Assembly (NCBI GenBank): GCA_038496445.1
Contig: JALMLS010000619.1
Location: 924 to 64,923, forward strand
DNA: 64,000 nucleotides
Direction: 5' to 3'
From: Trichosphaerium sp. ATCC 40318
Taxonomy: Eukaryota; Protista; Tubulinea
The position numbers and the translations under genes are program-made. Positions within the stretch are counted from its first letter, which is position 1. Every line of letters begins with the position of its first letter. Positions 23,264 through 51,214 of the stretch are shown piece after piece. The notes beneath the pieces are model-generated. The model made no database searches. It was not told where the DNA came from and worked only from the letters and a program-made list of their open reading frames with translations.

Positions 23264-25322
23264 ATGTATCTGTTGATTGTTGTTTTAGTACTGGTGTTTG
23301 CTATAATTGGGAGGGTAAAACGCCAGTTATGTTTTGCAAGTTAACCAAAACCTCTTTAGATATTTATTTGGCCTTTTATCGAGTACAAAGGAGCCATTAA
23401 GGTGCATTTTAGGCGCTTGTGAGCTTGTTTACCATATTTAGCTCCCTGGACCACCTAGGCACATATTATTCGGTTCATTGTATAACATACCAATAGAGAA
23501 AGTAATGCAGGTATGTAGTTGATGGATTTATAAGACGGGTCAACTTTTAACCGCATTCACATTTTGCCGTTCTGACATTGGACTTACTGTTAACACAGAA
23601 ACAAGTCGAATGGAGTATCAAGTATGATCATGTTTTCAACCAGTGGATGGGACCTAGTGTGGTAATGGGCACGTCACGTGACATTTATACAACCCATTTC
23701 TAACCTCTTGTGAACAGCATGTGTAAGCGATCCAAAGTACATCAAGCCGCTAATGAGATCATCTGTGAACATTGAAAAAGGACTTGCGTACTTTATTATT
23801 CGTCCATGGCTACGAGATGGTCTTCTTCTCAGGTCAGACTGAACGTCACACAACTTCTCCTGACACTTCTCGTAGCTCAGGATCGAAATGGAAGACACGC
23901 AGGCGGTTGCTTACTCCAGGCTTCCACTACAATATCTTGAAGGTAGTAGGAAAATGCACAACACGTTTTTTAACTGGTATTGAAAGGGGTATGTTCGGCT
24001 AGCTGGCCAGAAAGCGAAGGAGTTCGTAGATATTGTGTACGCTTTTTTGACATAGCCATTTATCTAAAGCAATGATGATAGGGCCAATAAACATCTCGGA
24101 CAATTCATGGAGGTACAAAAAGAAATGACGCATCTCAGCTTGGATATTGTTGGTACATAAACATAAAAACTAGTGTTGTACTTCTGGCTTATTGTATTCT
24201 AGGTCTTTGTGCGTTTAATTCAGATTTTAACGCTACAAGTGGACAATCTGGTACGTACGAAGACAGTGCATGTGTTCTAAAATGGTACAGAGTATGTCAA
24301 TGCTGTAGAGGAGATCTCGTCAATGGCAGAGCACTGGATACGAAATCTTGCCTTTCTCCAAAATCATAGTCTATTTAAGCTTACGTCCACTGGATCACGT
24401 TACTTTAAAGCGATGAACATGATGCATGAACACACAGCAAATATTATAAGAAATCGTATGAGTGAGCTAAAGGAAGGAACTGTTTCCAAAAAGAAGAAGC
24501 TTGACTTTCTAGATATTCTCCTGGAGTGCCGTAATGAAGATGGCAAGCCTCTCGACTTCCTATCCATCCATGAAGAAGTTGATACATTCTTATTCGAAGG
24601 TACTACCTAAAACGAATCAGAGTAGGGTTGTTCTTTGTTTAACACTTCCGTTCTAGGTCATGATACAACTGGTCACTCTCTTAGTTGGGCGTTGTATTGC
24701 TTAGCTACAAATCCAGAAGCACAACGCAAAGCTCAAGAAGAAGTAGACAAAGTCCTAGGGGATAAGGAATTTCCAGAATACGGAGACCTAGCATTGTTCA
24801 AGTACTTGACTCTCTGTATAAAAGAAACAATGAGGTTGTACCCAGCAGGTAATATTTCTTCCTTACTCTTGAACTCCCAGCTCTCTGACATGCGTAAATA
24901 GTTCCCTTTGTCATACGTAACCTCACCGAACCTTTGATTCTGAAAAATACAGTATTGTCAGCAGGCTCGATGGTTCAAGTGTCACCTTTTCTGTTGCATA
25001 GGAACCCTACTATATGGCCAGAACCAGAAAAATTTATCCCGGAAAGATTTTTAGAGTCGCCTAAACCATTCACATATATTCCTTTCAGCGCTGGTACGGA
25101 AGCTTTTAAACATACATGTGTACCTTGTTTCTGAAGCATATAATAGGACCTCGAAACTGTATTGGACAGAACTTCGCTATGCATGAAATGATAGTTGTTC
25201 TTGCAATGATACTTCGTGCTTATAACATTGAGTTGGATGCGGACCACACAATAATACCTGTCTTCAAAATTATTCTAAAGTCCCTCCATGGTGTCAAAGT
25301 AAAATTCAATAAGCGTGCTTGA
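23264..25322 (+). CDS. Cytochrome P450, CYP4-clan-like
   Basis: N-terminal anchor, LPGPP, PWLRDGLL..SGSKWKTRRRLLTPGFHYNILK, DFLDILL, EEVDTFLFEGHDTT, KETMRLYP (ExxR), PERF, FSAGPRNCIG haem motif. Confidence 0.95.
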
Positions 25323-25614
25323 TGTATGCATCTTCTTTGTAATAAATCACGTGATAACAAACAGTTTTTATTTGGCATTTCGCATGGCAGTTTTGTGATA
25401 CTAAAAGGTTATGACTGTTGGATGCTTTATGCCTTTACTCTGATGGCTAGGTAACAAAGCTTTCAGTGTGAATTCCAAGTTCTCTTATTCAGTAGCAATT
25501 GGTTATGGTCAACTCGCAATAAAAAGAGTGTAAAGTCAAACTTAAGGATGAGTTGACTCAATCACAAAACATTTTTTCTGTTTTAATTGTAAGTGGTTTC
25601 AAACGGCTAAAACG

Positions 25615-26911
25615 ATGTCGCAGGCAATAAATTACCTTGAGAATATTCCACCAGTACCTATCATAGATCATTAAATTGCAAATTAACAATAAAACAGGAA
25701 CTCTTCTTTTTTCTTCAAGATGAAATGCCTATATCGGTTATGGGGCGTATAGCATGTACCTCAAAGCTTTTAAACTCTGTAAGTTTGTGTTTAATCTAAA
25801 ACTGTTAACAACATCCAAAGGCGTTCGATAATGCGTCAATGTGGAGAAATAAAGCTAAATCAGTATTTCCTGGATCAATACACAGTTTACAAGTTTCAAA
25901 TAACGCTTGGCGGGAAGCTTATGCGCTATTAGGTACCCTCACTCATTAGCAATGCCAATGAGATGTTTATATTGATCATTTAGAGGGTAACTCTGCGAAA
26001 AACACAATACCTTGGGAAACAGACGATAAAAGCAGATTCAAACTAAAAATAGAACCGAAACAAAATGAAATTTCCGTTAAACAACTTTCAGATCCAACTA
26101 CTTCCAGACCTGCTTGTGTATGTCTTTTTTTGTCACCTATTGCCTAAATTAAGTATATTTTTAGACTGTAAAGCTTCCAAAGTGGACTTTTGCATCAGCA
26201 GAGGAAGGTCCACGTGTCATGTTATGTTACTACGAAATTACAATCGTTAAAAAAAATCCTTTTGACAGGTATGGAAAAAAACCAAACATACATCGATTCT
26301 AATTAAGATATAAGCTCTTTTGCTGTAGGTATAGGACCAAAAGATTTTACAAATACTTACCAGTGTGTTGGATGGCTTGATTCGTCATTTGCACTTCATA
26401 CAGACGACTTTGGCACGTGCTAAACAAATTTGTTTATTGTCCTTGGTTTTAGTAACATTAGTTTAAAGGGCAGTACTTTTCTCTCTATGCAGGACCTAAA
26501 CACCATTTTGAAGCAAACAACCATGAAATTGCAGTTGGTGATACCGTTGGATGTGGTATATGCTGGAACGGAGTTGTAATATGGACTCTCAATGGAAAAC
26601 TGTTGGAGATTGGAGCAGTTTCATTGAATAATGACAAAGAATATATTGAGTCGTATGACTTAGATTATAGAGAAATCATCTTGTTCTAATCTACTACTAG
26701 ATATCATGGCGCTATTACAAGCTTATCCAACGGTGATGACTACGTCATCAACACTGGGCGCAAGCCGTTTAAATTTGACACTACATCATTTTTAACGAAA
26801 TATGAAAATACTATTAAAGGCCTAGTACTTAATGCATGTGACGGTGGATCTTTGTTTGTTTCAAATAACATGCGCCCAAAAAGATATGACAGTCAAATAC
26901 CCAAAGATTAA
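25615..26911 (+). CDS. F-box + SPRY domain protein
   Basis: F-box pattern LENIPPELFFFLQDEMPISVMGRIACTSKLLNSAFDNASMWR. SPRY pattern VGWLDSSFALHTDDFG, VGDTVGCGI, VIWTLNGKLL, VINTGRKPFKFD. Confidence 0.8.
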
Positions 26912-35601: not shown

Positions 35602-36261
35602 ATGGGATCCATTATAACATCATTTAAGAAACTCGGCAAAAAAGACGTAAGATTGCTTATGCTGGGCTTAGATGCTGCTGGAAAGACGGTAAACTATCTA
35701 TCTACGCCTATGAAACTAATAAATAATCTAGACAGTGCTTTACAGACTCAATTTGGGCGAAACCGTTAGATCTATTCCAACAATCGGGTTCAACGTCGAA
35801 GAAGTCAGATACAAGAAGCTACAGATGCAAATATGGGATATCGGTACGTATCAGTTTACCTACTTGAACGAACAGTGAGCGATCACGTGATTTTTTGTTG
35901 ACAACGAGAAACTTATTTTCTTTTAGGCGGTCAAGATAAAATTCGACCTCTTTGGAGACATTACTACAATAAGGTTGACGCCTTGATTTATGTTGTTGAT
36001 AGCTCAGACACCGACAGATTTGACGAAGCACATCTCGAACTTAAGAAAGTTTTAAGTGTTGCACAATTGCGTGGAGCACCTGTTTTAGTTTTTGCAAATA
36101 AGCAAGATTTACCAAAAGCAAGTCCTATAATGGAAATGGGACACTCTCTTGGTCTTCATGATTTAAAAGATAGAAAATGGCATATGCAAGCATCAGTTGC
36201 AACAACTGGTGAAGGATTATACGAAGGTTTAGATTGGCTTTCAAATGCACTCAAAAAATAA
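35602..36261 (+). CDS. ADP-ribosylation factor (Arf) family small GTPase
   Basis: N-terminal MG (myristoylatable Gly2), [53 protein letters not shown]; two introns. Confidence 0.96.
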
Positions 36262-36649: not shown

Positions 36650-37504
36650 ATGAACGACACAGTACGCGCCCAGCTTTTAAAAAAGGCTATAACTAAGTCA
36701 CATCCGTTTACTATCTACGCTTGTGCCAGTGGTCTAAGTATGCTCGGTATAATTGGGTACTTTAACTACAGCACACCTGGATGGGCCACAGAAGCTGTTC
36801 CAGATGAATCAGATACAATACTCTTTAAAAATGAAGAGTACACGGTCGGTAAACGACAAGACCAAAACGAAGTATACGCTATTAGTACAAGGAATGTAGG
36901 TTGGTGGTATGGATACTTACCAGAATGGTACAACTCCGAAACTACAAGTGTCGTCTTACCAAGAGGTATAAACGACATAGAACTGTATGATAAATCAGGT
37001 ACTAAGCCAAAGAGTATAGCTTTGAATCGAATCATGCCTAACTGGGAGTACAATCTTTATAGTGGAGCATGTGTTATAGGCATGTCCAGTATAAGTGGTG
37101 GAATTGGTAAACTACTCTGGTCACGTGTTAAGCTATCACAGTTCAGAAAATCATCAGTCAAATTTGGAGGTGATGTTGGTTGTATGGTTGCTTTGTATTC
37201 TATTGTTCCCGGAACTTTCTTATTGTATGGTTTAATGAACCTTGAGCATGCTTCGAAAATATTCTATGAATCAGAGAGGAATTGGCCTGACGGAGAGACA
37301 AGGTGGCCAACGTACGATACTATGGGTTTAGTCCGAAAACATGTTGGTGTTCTTGCAGGTGTATTGATCTTTAGTTTGTTTGGAGTAGCCATTACTGGAT
37401 TTCTTGTAGGTCCTCCCGGGTATTTAACTGGGACTAGGCATTCTAAAATAGTATTATCAGAATACAGAAAGTTGTATAGGCTGTACAAAAGAAAAAAATA
37501 TTGA
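36650..37504 (+). CDS. Intronless hypothetical membrane protein, 284 aa
   Basis: Uninterrupted ORF with ACCACC-ATG context, about four hydrophobic segments and a basic C-terminus. No family recognised. Confidence 0.7.
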   Translation: MNDTVRAQLLKKAITKSHPFTIYACASGLSMLGIIGYFNYSTPGWATEAVPDESDTILFKNEEYTVGKRQDQNEVYAISTRNVGWWYGYLPEWYNSETTSVVLPRGINDIELYDKSGTKPKSIALNRIMPNWEYNLYSGACVIGMSSISGGIGKLLWSRVKLSQFRKSSVKFGGDVGCMVALYSIVPGTFLLYGLMNLEHASKIFYESERNWPDGETRWPTYDTMGLVRKHVGVLAGVLIFSLFGVAITGFLVGPPGYLTGTRHSKIVLSEYRKLYRLYKRKKY

Positions 37505-38154
37505 ACCAATCAATTTTTTTTTATTTACGTTTTGGGTGAGTTTATGTGCTTACTCTGTTCGCTCACATTGTAGGCAAAACTGAGTAAAACCAGAAAAACA
37601 ACAAATTGGTATGTGCTGTAACCTTTCGGGCGAGTGTGGTTAATAATATTGTTTTATCCGCGTAACAATACGTTCTGCCAAAACTAGTGGATTTTGTAAT
37701 TTGACAATACAAATCACTTACATTTTGGACAATACACTTCGATCAGCATCTACAATAGTACAATACTCACCAAATGTTGGTGGGCATGCACGTGAACTAG
37801 TGTTACCTCTGGATATAGACATCCAGCCTTATTTAGGTCTGAGGTATATGCATCTAATGCTGAATAGTTTCTCCAGTTCTTGTTCTCACGTACAAAGTGT
37901 AATTATACCCAGCTGTAGTCCCCTTAAATTTTCAAAAGCAAATGAGTTATGGCTCTTCGTCAATGTAGATCTACCACGTTAATTAACCATTTATTGCTTG
38001 TTATGGCGAAGTAATGCTCACAGAGATAAACAAAGGTATTCAGAATTAGCTTTGTTCGTGGAGTTATTGAAAACTTTCGGAGAAAACGAGACTATTTTAT
38101 GTATGCGGGTGAAGTTACATCAAAGAGATTGTGCTCTTTGTACTGATTTTATTG

Positions 38155-38429
38155 CTAGTTCATACACTCTCCGAACTCTGGACATTTATCTCCAGGACAT
38201 GGAAAAAAGAAGACACAACAGTAATACTTGTTCAAAGGATGACCGCAATCTTCACAGGAACCAGCTGGGTCTCCAGGAGAAATCGTACATGGTATCGCCT
38301 TTGAAGAACAGTAAGAATGTGGTTGGGTATTCGGTACTTTTTTAAAAATCAAGTTGTTCGTACTTCGGTTACAGTGAAGAAGAATAAAGTAGCAAGTGCA
38401 AAGAGGATAAAAGTTGTTGAGGTGCGCAT
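38155..38429 (-). CDS. Small secreted 8-cysteine peptide precursor, copy A (69 aa)
   Basis: Exons 38429-38364 and 38298-38155, 65-nt GT-AG intron: MRTSTTFILFALATLFFFTVTE-AIPCTISPGDPAGSCEDCGHPLNKYYCCVFFFPCPGDKCPEFGECMN. AATAAA right after the stop. Confidence 0.85.
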
Positions 38430-40030
38430 GTTGTAATGGATTGGGTTGTTTAAATTTTTGTTTACTATCTATGACATTTTGTTACACAACTTGTAAATAA
38501 TGCGAGAAATAAGATCACATGTGAATGATTGTCTGTCAAAAAACCCTTTTGAAACCAATAATGGTTTCTTATTTACTTTACACGCATATTCTACTTCGTT
38601 GTTCCAAACTTTGGTTCGGACCGTTGTGTTATAAGTTTAGAGAGTGATTTTCCGCTGTATTCTCTTCTAGAAACTGTGTAGAACAACGTTTGTTGTCCAC
38701 TCGCCCAAAACCCTATTCATACCTTTACTATAACCGCGTTTTTTGTGCACGTGTCCCAAATACAGAGTGACCTCACTTTGAACTCAAACAACCATAGCAT
38801 GTCGTAACAGCCCTTCTTACAACACCTCGGTGGAAAGTAGTAATTCACACAAGATTATACGCCTCGTAGAAGCATACAAACCCTATTGGTAGTAGTAGTA
38901 TGAATATGTTGGCAAGATGAGTATGTTGGCTATCTAAATAAGTACGAAAAGCAGGTACGATGTGTGATAAAGTTGAAATGGAGACTTATTTGCCAATGCT
39001 AAAACTTCAAAAGAGTTCCTCAAAAAAGACATTTGAATCAAAATCTCTGAGATGACTAAAAATATATTTTCCAAACTGGGTTAGGCGGGAACACAATCCG
39101 TTTGGTGCGTTTTTCATCCTCCCATTTGATGGATTACGGTCAGGTTATTATACAAACAAGCACTGGAAGTCAAGAAACAACAAAATACAGAGAATCTGTT
39201 TTTTTGTGATTCTTAACAATCCTAACGTATCCTGTACCCTTATAGCCCTGAAATTCTCCACAGACGATGTACGGATTGGAACGCGAAAAGTGAATAAATC
39301 ACAAGAGAGACTAAAACCTGTACAGACGCAAAACAATTGAAAAAAATCGTTTTATATTAACAGTCTTCGTGGAAAATTACAATTTTTATTGATAGGGTGT
39401 TCACAAGGGAAAGAAAAATCTACCTCATGTCATAAATCAAAGAATTGTTGGTTTAAAGAGAATCTTAAGAAACATACAGCAAACCAGTTGCCACCTATTG
39501 GTAAAAAACCCAAAGTTCTCCAAGACTATTTTCGAATGTTCGTTATCCCTAATAGAGTCACTATAGAAACTAGCCTGTATATATGGTCTAGACAATACTT
39601 TGCAGGTTGGGTTTATTAAGTGTACACAACTTTTTTTTTGTACCTTTTAAGAGAAGATAAACCGAACGGATTTATATTCTTATATTCTGCTGTTCAAAAA
39701 AGCACAACATGACGCTTTTACACCTATATTAAGTGTTTCAGGCTTTTTGAGTACCTGTAAAGCGGGGGGCTTGCGATAGTTTGAATCACAAAGGGGCGAA
39801 AACCGTAAACACAAACGGCATAACTGCTTTTTTAATTTGCTTTTGTATTTGTTTTTGTCTATCTCAACACGCCGCTAACTTTGGTGGTGTACGGAACAAA
39901 AAAAAGTACCAAATCGCTTCGCAGTGCCGAAATAATATATCTTTAACATGACGCTGTGACAGCGTGAACATGGTACAAAAACCCAAAAGTATCACATGTC
40001 AAAAAATCAAAAAACCCAATCCATTACAAC

Positions 40031-40308
40031 ATGCGCACCTCAACAACTTTTATCCTCTTTGCACTTGCTACTTTATTCTTCTTCACTGTAACCGAAGTAC
40101 GAACAACTTGATTTTTAAAAAAGTACCGAACACCCAACCACATTCTTACTGTTCTTCAAAGGCGATACCATGTACGATTTCTCCTGGAGACCCAGCTGGT
40201 TCCTGTGAAGATTGCGGTCCTCATCTGTTGAACAAGTATTACTGTTGTGTCTTCTTTTATCCATGCCCCGGAGCTAAATGTGAAGACTTTGCAGCTTGTA
40301 TGGAGTAG
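40031..40308 (+). CDS. Small secreted 8-cysteine peptide precursor, copy B (70 aa)
   Basis: Exons 40031-40096 and 40162-40308: MRTSTTFILFALATLFFFTVTE-AIPCTISPGDPAGSCEDCGPHLLNKYYCCVFFYPCPGAKCEDFAACME. AATAAA right after the stop. Confidence 0.85.
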
Positions 40309-40908
40309 CAATAAAATCAGTACAAAGAGCACAATCTCTTTGATATCACCCTCACCCCATACAGCATCGTTTTTCTTGAAACTTTCTATTGGAAGCCACT
40401 AGACACTTTTTTACATCCAAACTACTGTCATACACTTTGAATACAATCTACAAGTTGAGTGAAAGTGACAAACTATTTTTATGATAGCCAAAAAGCAATA
40501 TTAAGTACCGATTTGGGGCCTTGCTAGTATTTCTTTGCAACCAGGCCCAAACATGCTAACTTGAAAGATAGTTGCAAATATGGTGACCTTAGAGTCAAAA
40601 ATAAAAGCTGCTCTTTCGTCCGTGGAAATAACTTTATTTCGATTTAGCCCTTAAGCTTTTAAAAAGTAACTCCCGATCAGCAAGCACGTGACTTTCTGGT
40701 CACCACCACAAAGTACTCGTTAAGGATACATCAATAGGTTAGCTTGTAGTCTAGGGGTTGCCTGTACTCACAAACCATCTCGAAAAACTAGCTTAGCGCT
40801 AAAAAATAGAGTTCAGGTCAAACCCAAGCAATGTTGACTACAGTGCACGCTTTTTGATTTGAAAATTGGTCGTTGCCTTTAACCACGTAACGCGGGAAAG
40901 TCATAGAG

Positions 40909-46482: not shown

Positions 46483-49400
46483 ATGTCTTCCAGCCTAAAG
46501 TGGTCCGACGTGCTTTGCGAAGAAGAAAAAAGTTGTGTAAATGTAGCACTTCACCCGGACGGACAGTACGCGCCTCATTACGTCTTTTAGCGTACTAAGA
46601 CTATATGGAGGCATATATTTCTGTGTTCTCACGAAAACAACGATGTTACAGTGTTAGATATCAAAAACAGTGATGCCAACCCAGAAATTGTGCCACACGA
46701 GGAAGGAGTATACGCAGTAACGACTACTATAAAAGTAAGCGTTAAAAAAAAAGAATCAAGACTAACGTAAACGTAGGGTGATATGTTTGCTACAGCTTGT
46801 GGCGATCGTGGGTTGTATTTGTACGAGTACCCTTCAAAAGGTGGCAATTTCACAAAAACACTCTTAACACGCTTCGAAAACGCTGTATATGACGCAAAGT
46901 TCGATCCTACAGATGAACGTGTCGCTGGCGCAGGGTACGTTTCTTAAATTTGCTCATCAACGCAAAAACAGCGTTAAATACTAGCGAAATGCACCGCAGC
47001 TTTGTTTCTAGCAGTTCTGATCATTTTTTTTTTCAACGGTTAATTAAATATTTGAAACTAATCAGAGTTTTCTAGCGCTGACGGTGTCATTCGTATTGTT
47101 TCAGTAGTTGGAGGCGATTTAAAGCTATTAAAGGGACATACTAGCTCTGTTACAACAGTTGCTTTCGATCCACAACGAAAATACCTTGTACGTTTAGAAC
47201 CCGCTCGACGTTGTCCTTGAATACACAATTGAGCTCCAAACGATCTCTCTGTGACGTTCTTTTACTGTCACAAAACTTTTTATTTCATTTCATTTCTTAC
47301 GCCGATTCTAGGCTTCTACAAGTACTGATTGTACTTTACGCATATGGAATCTAGACAAAGAAGAAGATTCAGAAGTACACAAAGCGGAAATGCTCCCTAA
47401 GGGCGGAATTACACAAAAACAACCTCATCGCATATCCTGGAATATTGATGGCTCACTTCTCGCTGTGCCAACTGCAAAAGGTATGCGCGATGCGCGTTTT
47501 TCTTGTTTTTTGTGTTTTTCGTGTATTTTTAATGATTGTCTCGTTAGGTGTCGTTTTATTACAACGTGGCAGTTGGAAGGTTGTTGGAGAGTTTAAAGAG
47601 CATAATGTAGAAGCAGTTGCAACGGTACGTGCTGTTCCTTTTTTTCTTTTGGTTTTTTTTTCTTATTTTTTTTTTGTAGATGTTTTCTCCTCGTGGTGAG
47701 TTCTTAGTTTCCAGTCATGTTGATGGAAGTGTTTTATTATGGAATGTAAAAACAAAAGAGTCTTTAGAGCGTCACAGATGTGATTCTCGCGTTACTTCAA
47801 TGGCATGGAATACTAAGGTAAACGCCTGAGGTTTTGAACTATTTTTGGTCTAGTTCGTTTTTAACTGTTCTTTTAGGATAATGCTGTCATTCTAGTCAAC
47901 GAGGACGGCGAGTTTGCTGTATGGGATAACATACTCTCTTCACACATGAAGCGTGAAGAGACTGGTACTGTAAAGAAAAACCCTATCGACTCTCAAAGAA
48001 AGCAGATTGAGAAGTGCGTTGTACTTCTTTTTTATTTCTCCTACTTCGCTTCTTCTAACCGACCTTGATGTAGTTTAACCAGTATGTTCCTTGATGATGA
48101 GTGCGATGTTGATGAAGATGTTGAGATGGAACAAATCTCTGCTGCTAATATCATAACGTGCGTAACGAAGCTATGAAAAAAAAAACCTAAGAACCTACCT
48201 GGATTTCTAATTCGACAGATATTTTTCTGCCCTCGTGACTGTTTATTGTCAACTTTATTTTCCCGCGTATATGTATTTTCCTTGGTTATTTTTTGACAGT
48301 ATGTTTAGTAAACCAACGACAAAGCAAACGAAAAAAGTAAATAGACGTGTTGCTAAATCATCGAAAGTCTTGGACTCTGATGAAGAAGATGAGTTATTAG
48401 GCCAACTCGCACAAGAAGAAGAAGAAATGGATGATATTCCTGAAACACAAATACCTGTACGTCTCAATTGTGACATGAGTAGTAGACTGTGAATCTGACT
48501 TTTTCGAAAACTAGGATTACGTTGATTTTGAAACAAAAAGATTTGGATCTGTTGACAAACAAAGACAAACAACACTCACCAGTCACTTGAAACCTGTACA
48601 TATTGATGATATTTCACCAACTGTTAGAGCACCTCAAGCTCCTTTTCAACCAAATGCTTCGCCTATTGGAGAACAAAGAAGGTTTCTCGGTGCGTTTTAA
48701 TTTCAAATCCTATTTTTTTCTCTTTTTTCTTGTTTTTAACGATTTCGCGCTTACATTGATTTTTTTAGCTTGGAACAACCATGGTTCAGCAGTATCACGA
48801 TACGACGGTGTTACTTCTTATATTGACATTGAGTTTGCTGACTTGGGACGTCACAGAAACTTCAGCCTTTCCAAAAATTTTGCAATCGGTACGTTGGGTT
48901 TTTTTGTGTTGTTCAACGGTTTTTTACTGATTGTAACGCCTAGATTTCGGCGCTGTTGCTGATGACGCTTTGGTATTAGCTAGCCCTGGCACCCTTTTCT
49001 ACAGAAAATATGATAACTTTATGTGGGAGTCATCTCAAGGGTGGTCAATCAATCTAGTAGACAAAGAAGCCATTCAACGTACACGCTTTTTTTTTCACAA
49101 AATGTCAGGCGTCAGCCGCTTGTACTTTACCGTTATTACTCGTTCTGTTGTGGCTAAGACGTATGTATAGTTCTTGCTGCTGGTACTGGATTTGTTGCTA
49201 TTGGTACAACAAACAACTACGTCCGCATCTTTTGCTCTGGTGGTATGGAAAAGTACGTCTTTCTTATCTGTTTTTTTTATACTTGACACGTCATTAACGT
49301 TATTTACTTCTAGAGCCATCCTTTGTTTCGGTCCTTTACTGTCAATGTCTGCTCAAGAGCATATTCTCGCTATTGTATACCATGCAGGCATGTACTCTAT

Positions 49401-51214
49401 CAACTTGTTTGAAATCAACGGCTATCTTGCTTATGTTTTTTTTTGCTTTAGGTTCTAGCCGTAAATTAGTTCTCATGGATACACGTGACCGTTCAGTTGT
49501 ATATCATAAAGACTTACCTTGTCCTGCTAATGTTAATCTAACATGGATTGGGTTCTCTCGTGATGGTATTTTCCATATTCTCAGAGATGACGGTAAAATG
49601 TTGTGTTTGGCTCATTGGGAAGAGTAAGTTTGCTTTTTTTTTTTGGGCTTTGTTTTTAATTTCGGTTTTCGAATCTATACTGATGTTTATGGTAGCGACA
49701 AACCTTGTGGTGGACTATGGCAAGTTGTTCTTGAGGTTGACCAAAAGAGACGTATCTGGCCTATTCAGATTCAGTCCAGCGGAACACTTTTATACCTTCC
49801 TTTGTTGGTACGTAATGCTTTTTGTTTCTTTTTTGTCATCAAGAACGATGTTGTATTTTCGCACGTGATATTTACACAATGTTAGGCTGATGAGATAGCA
49901 CCAAGGAATGTCAGTGCACGAAGGCCTGTACCAAGTACCATGAAGTAAGTTAGAAGAACGAGCTTTTTTACTTTTTTCCTCGTTTGGTTTGCTGATTTTT
50001 TTTTCAAAAGGGTTCGCGCACCTGTGTTGACACAAGACTCAAAGTATGCTGCGTTTGGCGAAAAGTTCATGAGAGACTCCATTCGTTATCACACTTTGGA
50101 ACCAGCACTTGAAGAAGGTCCTGAACTGTTGCAGGAGCAAATTAAACTCGATAAGATTGCTTTGCAATTGTTCCAAGTACGCCTTTTTTTTTTTCTCGTT
50201 TTTACATTTTTCGGCTGTTAGAGGATCAACACCTTTATCTTCTCTATCCTCACGCTTTGTCTACGATTATCCAAAGCATTGCTTCTTTTAAAACCAAATT
50301 TAAACCTACAACTAGTTTACAAAACAGTTTGTCGATCGTTTTCTTCTCCTCCACCTTTGCTTACATTTCTACCTTAGATTGCCTGTGAGAAGGGTAAACA
50401 AGAACGTGCGTTGAATCTTGCTAAAGATCTATTACTCGGTGGTTCGATAGAAGGTGCCCTTCAGTTGGCATTCAATAAGCAAGTATGTATTATTCAATTC
50501 CCTCTTTGTATAGCACGTGTTAACTTTTTTTTGTTCAGCTTCGTGGTTTGACTGAGCGTATCACAGCATTCAGAGATTCTGAATTTGGCGAACAAGAAGA
50601 AGAGTCTGAAGAGGAGCTAGAGTTATCTATTGAAGACGATACGTCAAGCCGCTCTGTAAAGCGTAGAAGAGTTGATTACAACAAGAGCCAAGCGACAAAA
50701 ACGTAAGCCCTTTAATTTGAAAACGTTTTTCTTTTTGCGTTGACTGACATTGTGTTGTAGTGATCGCTTGGTTTCTGAGCCTGTTGAAGACGTTAGTGAT
50801 GATGACTCTGATGATGCTATGGACGAGGATGTTGAAGAAAATGATGATAAAGAGAACAGTACGGAGAAGTTATCGCGTCAGCAATTTGTTCTTTTTTTTT
50901 TTCATTTATATTTGTTTGTTCATTTTTTTTTCCATTAGAGCAAGCCAACATTACTAAGAAACCTTTCAATCCTTTTGCTTCTAAGAAGAAGAAAGTCAGT
51001 GGGGGTAATGGTACGTCTTCTTACCTGAAACATGATGTCTTGAGAGCAGAAAACAGCATAGAGATTTCTTCGTTTTAGTAATGAACTTTTTTGTATTGAC
51101 TTTTTTTCAGGTTGCATCTTCTCTACAATCGGTGGTATTGTATCAAAAGGAAAGGATAGTCCTCTTACACAACGTACAAAGGGTAGAAAGAGAAAATTAC
51201 AATCTGGGTTGTAA
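46483..51214 (+). CDS. WDHD1: Ctf4/And-1 (WDHD1, SepB) replisome hub protein
   Basis: N-terminal WD40 repeats (LLTRFENAVYDAKFD, LKGHTSSVTTVAFDP, STDCTLRIWNL) and an acidic linker. SepB domain APFQPNASP..QRRFLAWNNHG...YIDIEFAD, WIGFSRDG, QIKLDKIALQLFQIAC...RALNLA. Tail KPFNPFASKK. Confidence 0.9.

Follow-up and report, generated by a model that had tools for sequence, protein, structure and literature searches.

An inverted pair of genes for predicted secreted eight-cysteine peptides in an amoeba, with a toxin-like pattern that appears to stem largely from gene conversion

When two neighbouring genes share an identical leader and differ in the cysteine-rich peptide that follows it, is the peptide evolving fast, or has the rest of the gene been kept uniform? 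The question is raised by a stretch of 64,000 nucleotides (hereafter the window) of the 70-Mb genome of Trichosphaerium sp. ATCC 40318, corresponding to C249:924-64923, C249 being one of the 642 contigs of the assembly. It contains two two-exon genes in head-to-head orientation, copy A at window positions 38155-38429 (minus strand) and copy B at 40031-40308 (plus strand), each encoding a hydrophobic leader and a small peptide with eight cysteines. A preliminary description of the pair, made from the letters of the DNA, likened its variation to that of toxins and pheromones. The analysis presented here favours another explanation, to which we give a probability of about 0.72: an ancestral two-gene cassette, shaped by gene conversion and held under purifying selection, would encode secreted, disulfide-locked helical mini-peptides.

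The anatomy of the pair was as described beforehand. The two-exon coordinates could be extracted for both genes, and the arms of the inverted repeat (about 38100-38460 and 40000-40363) were recovered independently by a repeat finder. The signal exons, said to be identical, differ at 0 of 66 nucleotides and the introns at 1 of 65; the shared 3' untranslated region (3'UTR), put at ~35 nucleotides, is the same in both copies over the 36 nucleotides that follow the stop codon. Exon 2 begins with 57 nucleotides without any difference. Then come a single codon indel (GPHLL vs GHPL) and, in the rest of the exon, differences at 15 of 87 aligned bases, in keeping with the codon indel and many substitutions announced for the second half of the peptide, all cysteines being kept. 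Both peptides have the framework C-x10-C-x2-C-x8/9-CC-x5-C-x4-C-x5-C, and this spacing, like the C-terminal strings, agreed with the first reading. The differences between the copies are not scattered: 12 of the 19 lie inside one 40-nucleotide stretch, giving a maximum chi-square of 51.4 that none of 1000 permutations reached.

A DNA search of the organism's own genome raised the number of close copies to seven, namely three head-to-head pairs (one in the window, two on contig C23) and a single gene on contig C3. Each pair consists of one type-1 gene (loop GPHLL, end ME or MD) and one type-2 gene (loop GH[PH]L, end MN). Type-1 and type-2 promoters do not align with each other, and each aligns with that of its own type at the other locus, the window type-2 promoter showing 67-68 differences in about 255 nucleotides from those of C23. 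Since every pair holds both types, and since the promoters match their own type elsewhere, the pair appears to predate its duplications and the cassette to be ancestral.

Maximum-likelihood trees of the close copies were built region by region, with bootstrap support, and they conflict. Promoters (-300 to -31) group by type with a support of 100/100. In the tree of the 5'UTR, exon 1, the intron and the first 57 nucleotides of exon 2, the four C23 copies form one clade regardless of type (99/99), monophyly of the types is found in 0% of the bootstrap trees, and the two window copies are nearly identical. The rest of exon 2 groups weakly by type (64/76). Fixed sites specific to a locus occur in exon 1, in the intron and in exon 2 up to column 247, and those specific to a type occur upstream of -34, in the loop indel (columns 189-196) and in the last codon. 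This conflict, in which the 5' part of the gene goes with the locus and the promoter with the type, argues that gene conversion has run between the two arms of every inverted repeat and has made their genes evolve in concert. Because they form such a repeat, the two genes would have corrected each other repeatedly over a stretch that starts in the 5'UTR and reaches midway into exon 2, the conversion tracts giving out near the codon indel that distinguishes the types. Beyond it, the C-terminal half would have kept its older divergence, under moderate purifying selection, with changes falling mostly on one face of the last helix.

The substitution rates point in the same direction. Transcribed non-coding sequence (30 nucleotides of 5'UTR, the intron and 40 nucleotides of 3'UTR) differs by 3.7-6.2%, the promoters and spacer by 26-62%, and the synonymous sites of the C-terminal half by 24-34% (a synonymous divergence of 0.24-0.36 per site); compared with the first class, the Fisher p value is <=1e-9 for promoter and spacer and <0.01 for synonymous sites. 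The intron, the UTRs and the 5' coding part are ~ten times more alike than the spacer or the C-terminal silent sites, and the neutral divergence of the spacer (0.26-0.36) is about that of the synonymous sites in the C-terminal half. Nothing seems to have been accelerated, since the variable half does not exceed the spacer in silent divergence: judging from these comparisons, the peptide is not hypervariable, and it is the rest of the transcript that is unusually uniform. The ratio of replacement to silent differences per site (pN/pS) never exceeds 1 in any comparison, ranging from 0.28 to 0.84. It is 0.68-0.84 for the window pair (11.5 replacement vs 3.5 silent changes), 0.28-0.41 for the C-terminal half of orthologous types at two loci, and 0.30-0.34 for the deepest pair, C23 type 2 against the C3 gene, where it is significantly below 1 (p<=0.001). 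Despite silent changes, the type-2 peptides of the two C23 pairs show no difference, and those of type 1 differ at 2 residues. The toxin- or pheromone-like variation seen at first is therefore not supported by these measurements. The look of a constant leader with a variable peptide would be mainly a by-product of gene conversion, not of toxin-like rapid evolution, and, on a small scale, the locus would illustrate neatly how gene copies in inverted orientation, by converting one another, can come to look like a conserved leader with a hypervariable toxin, a useful caution for genome scans.

The reality of the genes themselves is suggested by what the copies have kept. All seven close copies retain the ATG, a 22-codon hydrophobic leader, GT..AG intron borders and an open exon 2 with its 8 cysteines. 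Their introns measure 63, 64 or 65 nucleotides, so that indels ignore the reading frame, and the core of exon 2 (47/48 codons) has undergone whole-codon indels only; together, these two facts support a spliced, two-exon reading of both window genes. One exception is the C3 copy, whose reading frame is changed by a 38-nucleotide insertion close to the 3' end of exon 2, so that its tail is extended and the peptide counts 57 residues. Two intronless paralogues carry the leader and the 8-cysteine domain in one open reading frame (ORF), which means that leader and peptide belong together. The window leader consists of MR, a 14-residue hydrophobic core with a mean Kyte-Doolittle value of 2.24, and TVTE. 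Every leader of the family likewise has MR, a hydrophobic core (mean 2.0-2.3) and, at -3/-1, small residues, a layout from which we infer that the peptides are secreted. The signal peptide of 22-23 residues would be cleaved off as the chain enters the secretory pathway, leaving a peptide of 46-48 residues.

Two AlphaFold runs, each on a 9-sequence alignment, predict a small disulfide-rich helical bundle. The copy B model has a predicted local distance difference test score (pLDDT) of 83 and a predicted template modelling score of 0.62, with helices at 22-32 and 37-47; that of an intronless paralogue (pLDDT 73) presents the same order of elements. A Pro/Gly-rich N-terminal arm with three cysteines and one short helical turn is followed by a helix bearing the CC pair and the aromatic residues FF[YF]; the chain then turns tightly at PC(P)G and leads into a final helix with two cysteines. 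In this helix, the invariant residues K39, C40, F/Y43, C46 and M47 lie on one face with helical periodicity, and the variable positions 38, 41, 42, 44, 45 and 48 form the other face; such a distribution would be expected where one side is packed into a folded core and the other is a free surface. The mature peptide would be locked by four disulfides, its N-terminal arm being pinned to the two main helices. Both window peptides have a net charge of -4; the family ranges from -4 to +3, most members lying between -4 and 0.

The family comprises about ten genes, i.e. the seven close copies and three intact distant paralogues, besides relics (Table 1). The paralogues came from profile searches of the genome (16 hits), and the search for further members proposed in the preliminary description was rewarded in all with two further pairs, a single copy, three distant paralogues and relics. 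The distant paralogues start with the same five residues, MRTST, and retain all 8 cysteines; over the ten genes, the ATG, leader, splice sites, frame and 8 cysteines are kept at 34-83% identity. The two intronless paralogues on contig C41 have near-identical copies on C476 and C536, which are probably haplotigs of C41. The C536 copy has a 1-nucleotide deletion directly after the ATG, either a broken allele or an assembly error. In the gene on C63, an unrelated 39-nucleotide intron is located at the boundary between propeptide and peptide, and the mature part has a net charge of +3. A 13th MRTST start, on contig C11, was dropped as a family gene: it has neither leader nor cysteine domain. The two C23 cassettes (23756-26354 and 47356-49884) form a 2.6-kb inverted duplication, 21 kb apart and ~95% identical; the inverted arms of C23 run ~130 nucleotides past the stop codon of each gene and cover ~490 nucleotides in total. 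The window cassette (2.4 kb) is homologous to them over its full length, with 55-70% identity in the spacer and 90-100% in the gene bodies. The idea that C249 is a haplotig of C23 was rejected; C249 is a separate locus, because the two share only the cassette, and this at 55-70% spacer identity.

Table 1. Coordinates of the cassette and of the other family members (window positions unless a contig is named)
Feature	Position	Strand	Remarks
Copy A (type 2) exon 1, putative signal peptide	38364..38429	-	66 nt, 22 codons, identical to copy B
Copy A putative intron	38299..38363	-	65 nt, GT..AG, phase 0; 1 difference from copy B
Copy A exon 2	38158..38298; TAG stop 38155..38157	-	47 codons, 8-Cys peptide ending CMN
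Copy A conserved 3'UTR	38119..38154	-	AATAAA, then hairpin 38121-38140
Type-2 5'UTR and promoter	38430..38892	-	First ~30 nt common to type 1; palindrome TCACATGTGA at 38515-38524
Central spacer	38893..39680	.	Weakly conserved, about 40-70% identity between cassettes
Type-1 promoter and 5'UTR	39681..40030	+	TCACATGTCA, 9/10 of palindrome, at 39992-40001
Copy B (type 1) exon 1, putative signal peptide	40031..40096	+	66 nt, identical to copy A
Copy B putative intron	40097..40161	+	65 nt, GT..AG, phase 0
Copy B exon 2	40162..40305; TAG stop 40306..40308	+	48 codons, 8-Cys peptide ending CME
Copy B conserved 3'UTR	40309..40344	+	AATAAA, then hairpin 40323-40342
Close copies, window pair	C249		
Close copies, pair	C23 at 23.9-26.3 kb		
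Close copies, pair	C23 at 47.4-49.7 kb		
Close copy, single gene	C3:669 kb		
Intronless paralogue	C41:198149-198360		Near-identical copy C476:16445-16644
Intronless paralogue	C41:275863-276062		Near-identical copy C536:6018-6128
Propeptide paralogue	C63:225106-225480		43-residue propeptide (lysine run, then aspartate run) between signal and Cys domain
Relic	C81:25637-25738		Frameshifted copy, related to the C63 gene
Relic	C117:96136-96207		C-terminal half without upstream exon
Relic	C11:713896		Bare 5'UTR and MRTST start, then unrelated sequence

Relatives outside this genome were sought with the exons taken separately and with the intronless paralogue as a contiguous form of leader and domain. 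In Pfam-A, copy B had no match, the intronless precursor none at E<=0.01, the propeptide exon nothing meaningful, and copy A only DUF6011 (E=0.015, 15.3 bits against a cut-off of 26.6); the families left unmatched include defensins, knottins, hevein/CBM18, saposin-like, PcF, nsLTP, CFEM and insulin. A word-index protein search with exon 2 yielded no candidate. A profile search of 1.84 billion representative proteins returned one match, to a spurious repetitive translation, so that the known structural or cyst-wall family to which the peptides might have belonged, according to the preliminary description, did not turn up there. Only chance rows of ribosomal eL37 (E about 0.05) came from a sequence search of the PDB, and the ESM Atlas gave no usable match. 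With the models, Foldseek found 0 matches in the PDB and only E>5 in BFVD, and VIA-align reported generic helical hairpins only (Z<=2.6 for copy B, Z<=4.1 for the paralogue). Scans of metagenome and viral contigs with back-translated motifs detected no relatives.

Several described cysteine frameworks do not accommodate the peptides either. Defensins of the cysteine-stabilised alpha-beta class are set apart by models without a strand and by the net charge of -4 of the window pair. Non-specific lipid transfer proteins (nsLTP) and 2S albumins of plants have the order C..C..CC..CxC..C..C, here replaced by C..C-x2-C..CC..C..C..C. Insulin-like peptides have a B-chain helix between their first two cysteines, followed by CC-x3/4-C-x8-C. 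In the window peptides, the segment from C4 to C15 is Pro/Gly-rich and non-helical in the model, and the spacings after CC are x5, x4 and x5. No CxxxC occurs in any member, unlike the two such motifs of alpha-hairpinins and of cysteine-stabilised helix-helix (CS-alpha/alpha) toxins. The family is apparently an orphan, in the sense that no relative is detectable in the libraries searched, which left out six-frame translations of amoebozoan genomes; the word means no more than undetected here, because tiny intron-split genes are rarely annotated and the family's own members are absent from protein libraries. The earlier proposal of an undescribed secreted disulfide-rich family thus stands in part: the genes look real and have no detectable relatives, and it is the toxin-like variation pattern that lacks support. 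What emerges appears to be a real family of small genes, not described before, that belongs with the lineage-specific secreted cysteine-rich peptides, a kind already familiar in general terms. Small peptides of this sort escape annotation by routine procedures, the more so if an intron divides their gene. Very few are on record from Amoebozoa, to which the family would add an apparently orphan helical 8-cysteine scaffold.

Several points weigh against the explanation by cassette, conversion and purifying selection. One exact-pattern scan of contigs found no transcripts, and the protein and contig collections likewise yielded nothing. The fold rests on only 9 aligned sequences and on a model that gives no read-out of disulfide pairing. 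As the comparison covers only 47 codons in 7-9 sequences, positive selection may still act on a few sites. Lastly, the intron and 3'UTR are near-identical even between contigs, including the C3 gene, whose exon 1 has a synonymous divergence (dS) of about 0.2-0.3. The intron shows 0-4 differences over its 63-65 nucleotides among the seven close copies. A 27-nucleotide core of the 3'UTR, unique to these genes in the whole 70 Mb, is the same in six of them and departs by 1 mismatch in the remaining one. Such sameness goes beyond what conversion inside each pair can account for by itself, and calls in addition either for ectopic conversion involving every copy or for selection acting on the RNA.

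As to the role of the peptides, our best guess, offered with low confidence, is an extracellular binding or signalling mini-protein of which two variants are maintained, rather than a cationic membrane-active antimicrobial. This guess is prompted by the persistence of the pair in three cassettes, the survival of type-specific residues beside the conversion tract and the palindrome shared by the two kinds of promoter.

A structural extracellular protein of the cyst wall, spore coat or matrix, made in bulk from multiple copies in a chorion-like layout, is possible, though we consider it unlikely. The peptides are rich in cysteine and in aromatic residues (6 of 48 are F or Y), and the near-identical copies, arranged in divergent pairs of two sub-types that evolve in concert, recall the silkmoth chorion A/B genes. 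The latter are divergent pairs of two sub-families, with a short signal exon, one intron, cysteine-rich products and gene conversion; there are >100 of them, and paired genes share a promoter of ~300 bp. The likeness is one of genome anatomy only, the proteins being unrelated; here, 1.6 kb of spacer with two unlike promoters separate the genes, and there are three pairs. The small number of genes, about 10 in all, speaks against such a protein. Amoebozoan cyst walls do contain lineage-specific lectin domains with 8 cysteines, the Leo lectins (PMC6541295), and the Entamoeba proteins Jacob and Jessie extend this likeness to lineage-restricted secreted domains with 6 or 8 cysteines. The Leo proteins of Acanthamoeba are 19-59 kDa in size and carry two 8-cysteine domains, often with a spacer (PMC6541295). 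The present peptides are single domains of ~5 kDa (46-57 residues), with neither repeats nor low-complexity spacers, a weak argument against their being Leo- or Jacob-like wall lectins; it is this description of Leo, together with the lack of a Leo match in the profile search, that sets them apart, and that search matched no such structural protein.

That these are weapons of a bacterivorous amoeba, directed against microbes or competitors, seems to us unlikely. Their being small, secreted by prediction, disulfide-stabilised and members of a lineage-specific multigene family would suit such a use, as would the cationic, propeptide-bearing C63 paralogue. The window pair and most other members are, however, acidic or neutral, and this charge, together with a predicted helical fold that is not that of a cysteine-stabilised alpha-beta defensin, argues against a classical cationic defensin; in Pfam, no similarity was seen to saposin-like amoebapores or to any family of antimicrobial peptides.

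Diversifying selection on the mature peptide, behind a constant leader, intron and UTR, as in toxins, defensins or pheromones, is in our opinion rather improbable. It would account for transcribed non-coding parts that are much more conserved than the C-terminal coding half, for charge-changing replacements at exposed positions (net charge -4 to +3) and for the excess of replacement over silent changes in the window pair. Conotoxins and other venom superfamilies resemble these genes in having a signal exon, an intron and a cysteine-rich exon, and in a mature peptide that is less conserved than leader, intron and UTR. Mature regions of conotoxins evolve faster than silent sites. Here the mature region is slower than silent sites, there is no homology, and the organism has no venom apparatus. 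The same pattern is also reported for the water-borne pheromones of the ciliate Euplotes (PMC9542385), secreted molecules of 32-109 residues with a leader far more conserved than the mature part (PMC9542385); like the peptides predicted here, they are small, all-helical, dense in disulfides and often acidic. The Euplotes fold is an up-down-up bundle of three helices with 3-5 disulfides, and our models have one short and two long helices. When the paralogue model was compared with Er-13, 36 of 38 residues were superposed (Z 2.7, root-mean-square deviation 2.6 A) at rank 37 among unrelated helical hairpins, and no Euplotes pheromone appeared in the fold search with copy B; the Er-13 match is compatible with a three-helix bundle and does not discriminate. 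Neither the profile search nor the PDB sequence search showed any similarity to these pheromones. In the window genes the signal leads straight to the cysteine domain without a pro-segment, which only the C63 gene has, and the genes, lying at different places in one assembly, appear to be multi-locus paralogues, the Euplotes pheromones being encoded by multiple co-dominant alleles of one mating-type locus. Conversion, as read from the mosaic trees, accounts for the uniformity of the 5' part, pN/pS is below 1 everywhere and significantly so at depth, the silent divergence of the variable half does not rise above that of the spacer, and the C23 peptides of either type have barely changed.

A bolder version of our best guess is a long shot. 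Types 1 and 2 would form a two-component system for extracellular recognition or signalling, akin to a pheromone, kin or density signal, in which selection would keep the loop, the exposed face of helix 3 and the C-terminus distinct against constant conversion, and the invariant intron and hairpin would serve as RNA control elements. If true, Amoebozoa would have their first described family of disulfide-rich peptide signals; should the peptides signal at all, or should the conserved intron or hairpin regulate expression, the locus would open a way into how amoebae communicate from cell to cell.

A decaying inverted duplication or foldback-type mobile element with chance open frames, as might be imagined from a 2.4-2.6-kb unit with inverted arms of 365-490 nucleotides, present at three places without flanking homology and with genes for which the contig scan found no transcript, is very improbable in view of the ATG, leader, splice sites, frame and cysteines kept in seven close copies and three distant paralogues, of pN/pS below 1, of the truly decayed relics on C81, C117 and C11 that provide a contrast, and of cassette ends that show no target-site duplication in the two 95%-identical C23 copies, for which reason a mobile element was rejected.

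Within the favoured scheme of a converting cassette, the signals around the genes deserve mention. As regards the co-expression from the shared spacer suggested in the preliminary description, the two types of promoter are unalike apart from one 10-bp palindrome, TCACATGTGA, present in all close copies (with 9 of 10 bases in copy B) at about -97 in type 2 and about -42 in type 1. The promoters of the distant paralogues do not have it. Another motif, AAAGTACC, common to the intron and the copy B promoter, was discarded: it is not conserved in the other copies. The 3'UTR hairpin, just 3' of AATAAA, has a 7-bp stem and a 6-nucleotide loop, with a predicted energy of -6.7 kcal/mol; its z value lies between -0.9 and -2.9, depending on the flanks included. 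The C3 copy has lost AATAAA and retained the hairpin. The intron folds no better than shuffled sequences, and an Rfam scan of intron and spacer gave only a chance SNORD20 match in the spacer (E=0.95).

Two features lie beside copy A in the window, at lower coordinates. At 35983-36258 (plus strand), ~2 kb from the cassette, there is an exon for the C-terminal half of a small GTPase of the Arf family (PF00025, E=7.6e-28). Adjoining copy A, an intron-free ORF of 284 codons (36650-37504, plus strand) encodes several hydrophobic stretches, and Pfam has no match for it; it is one of only two ORFs of at least 150 codons in the 64 kb.

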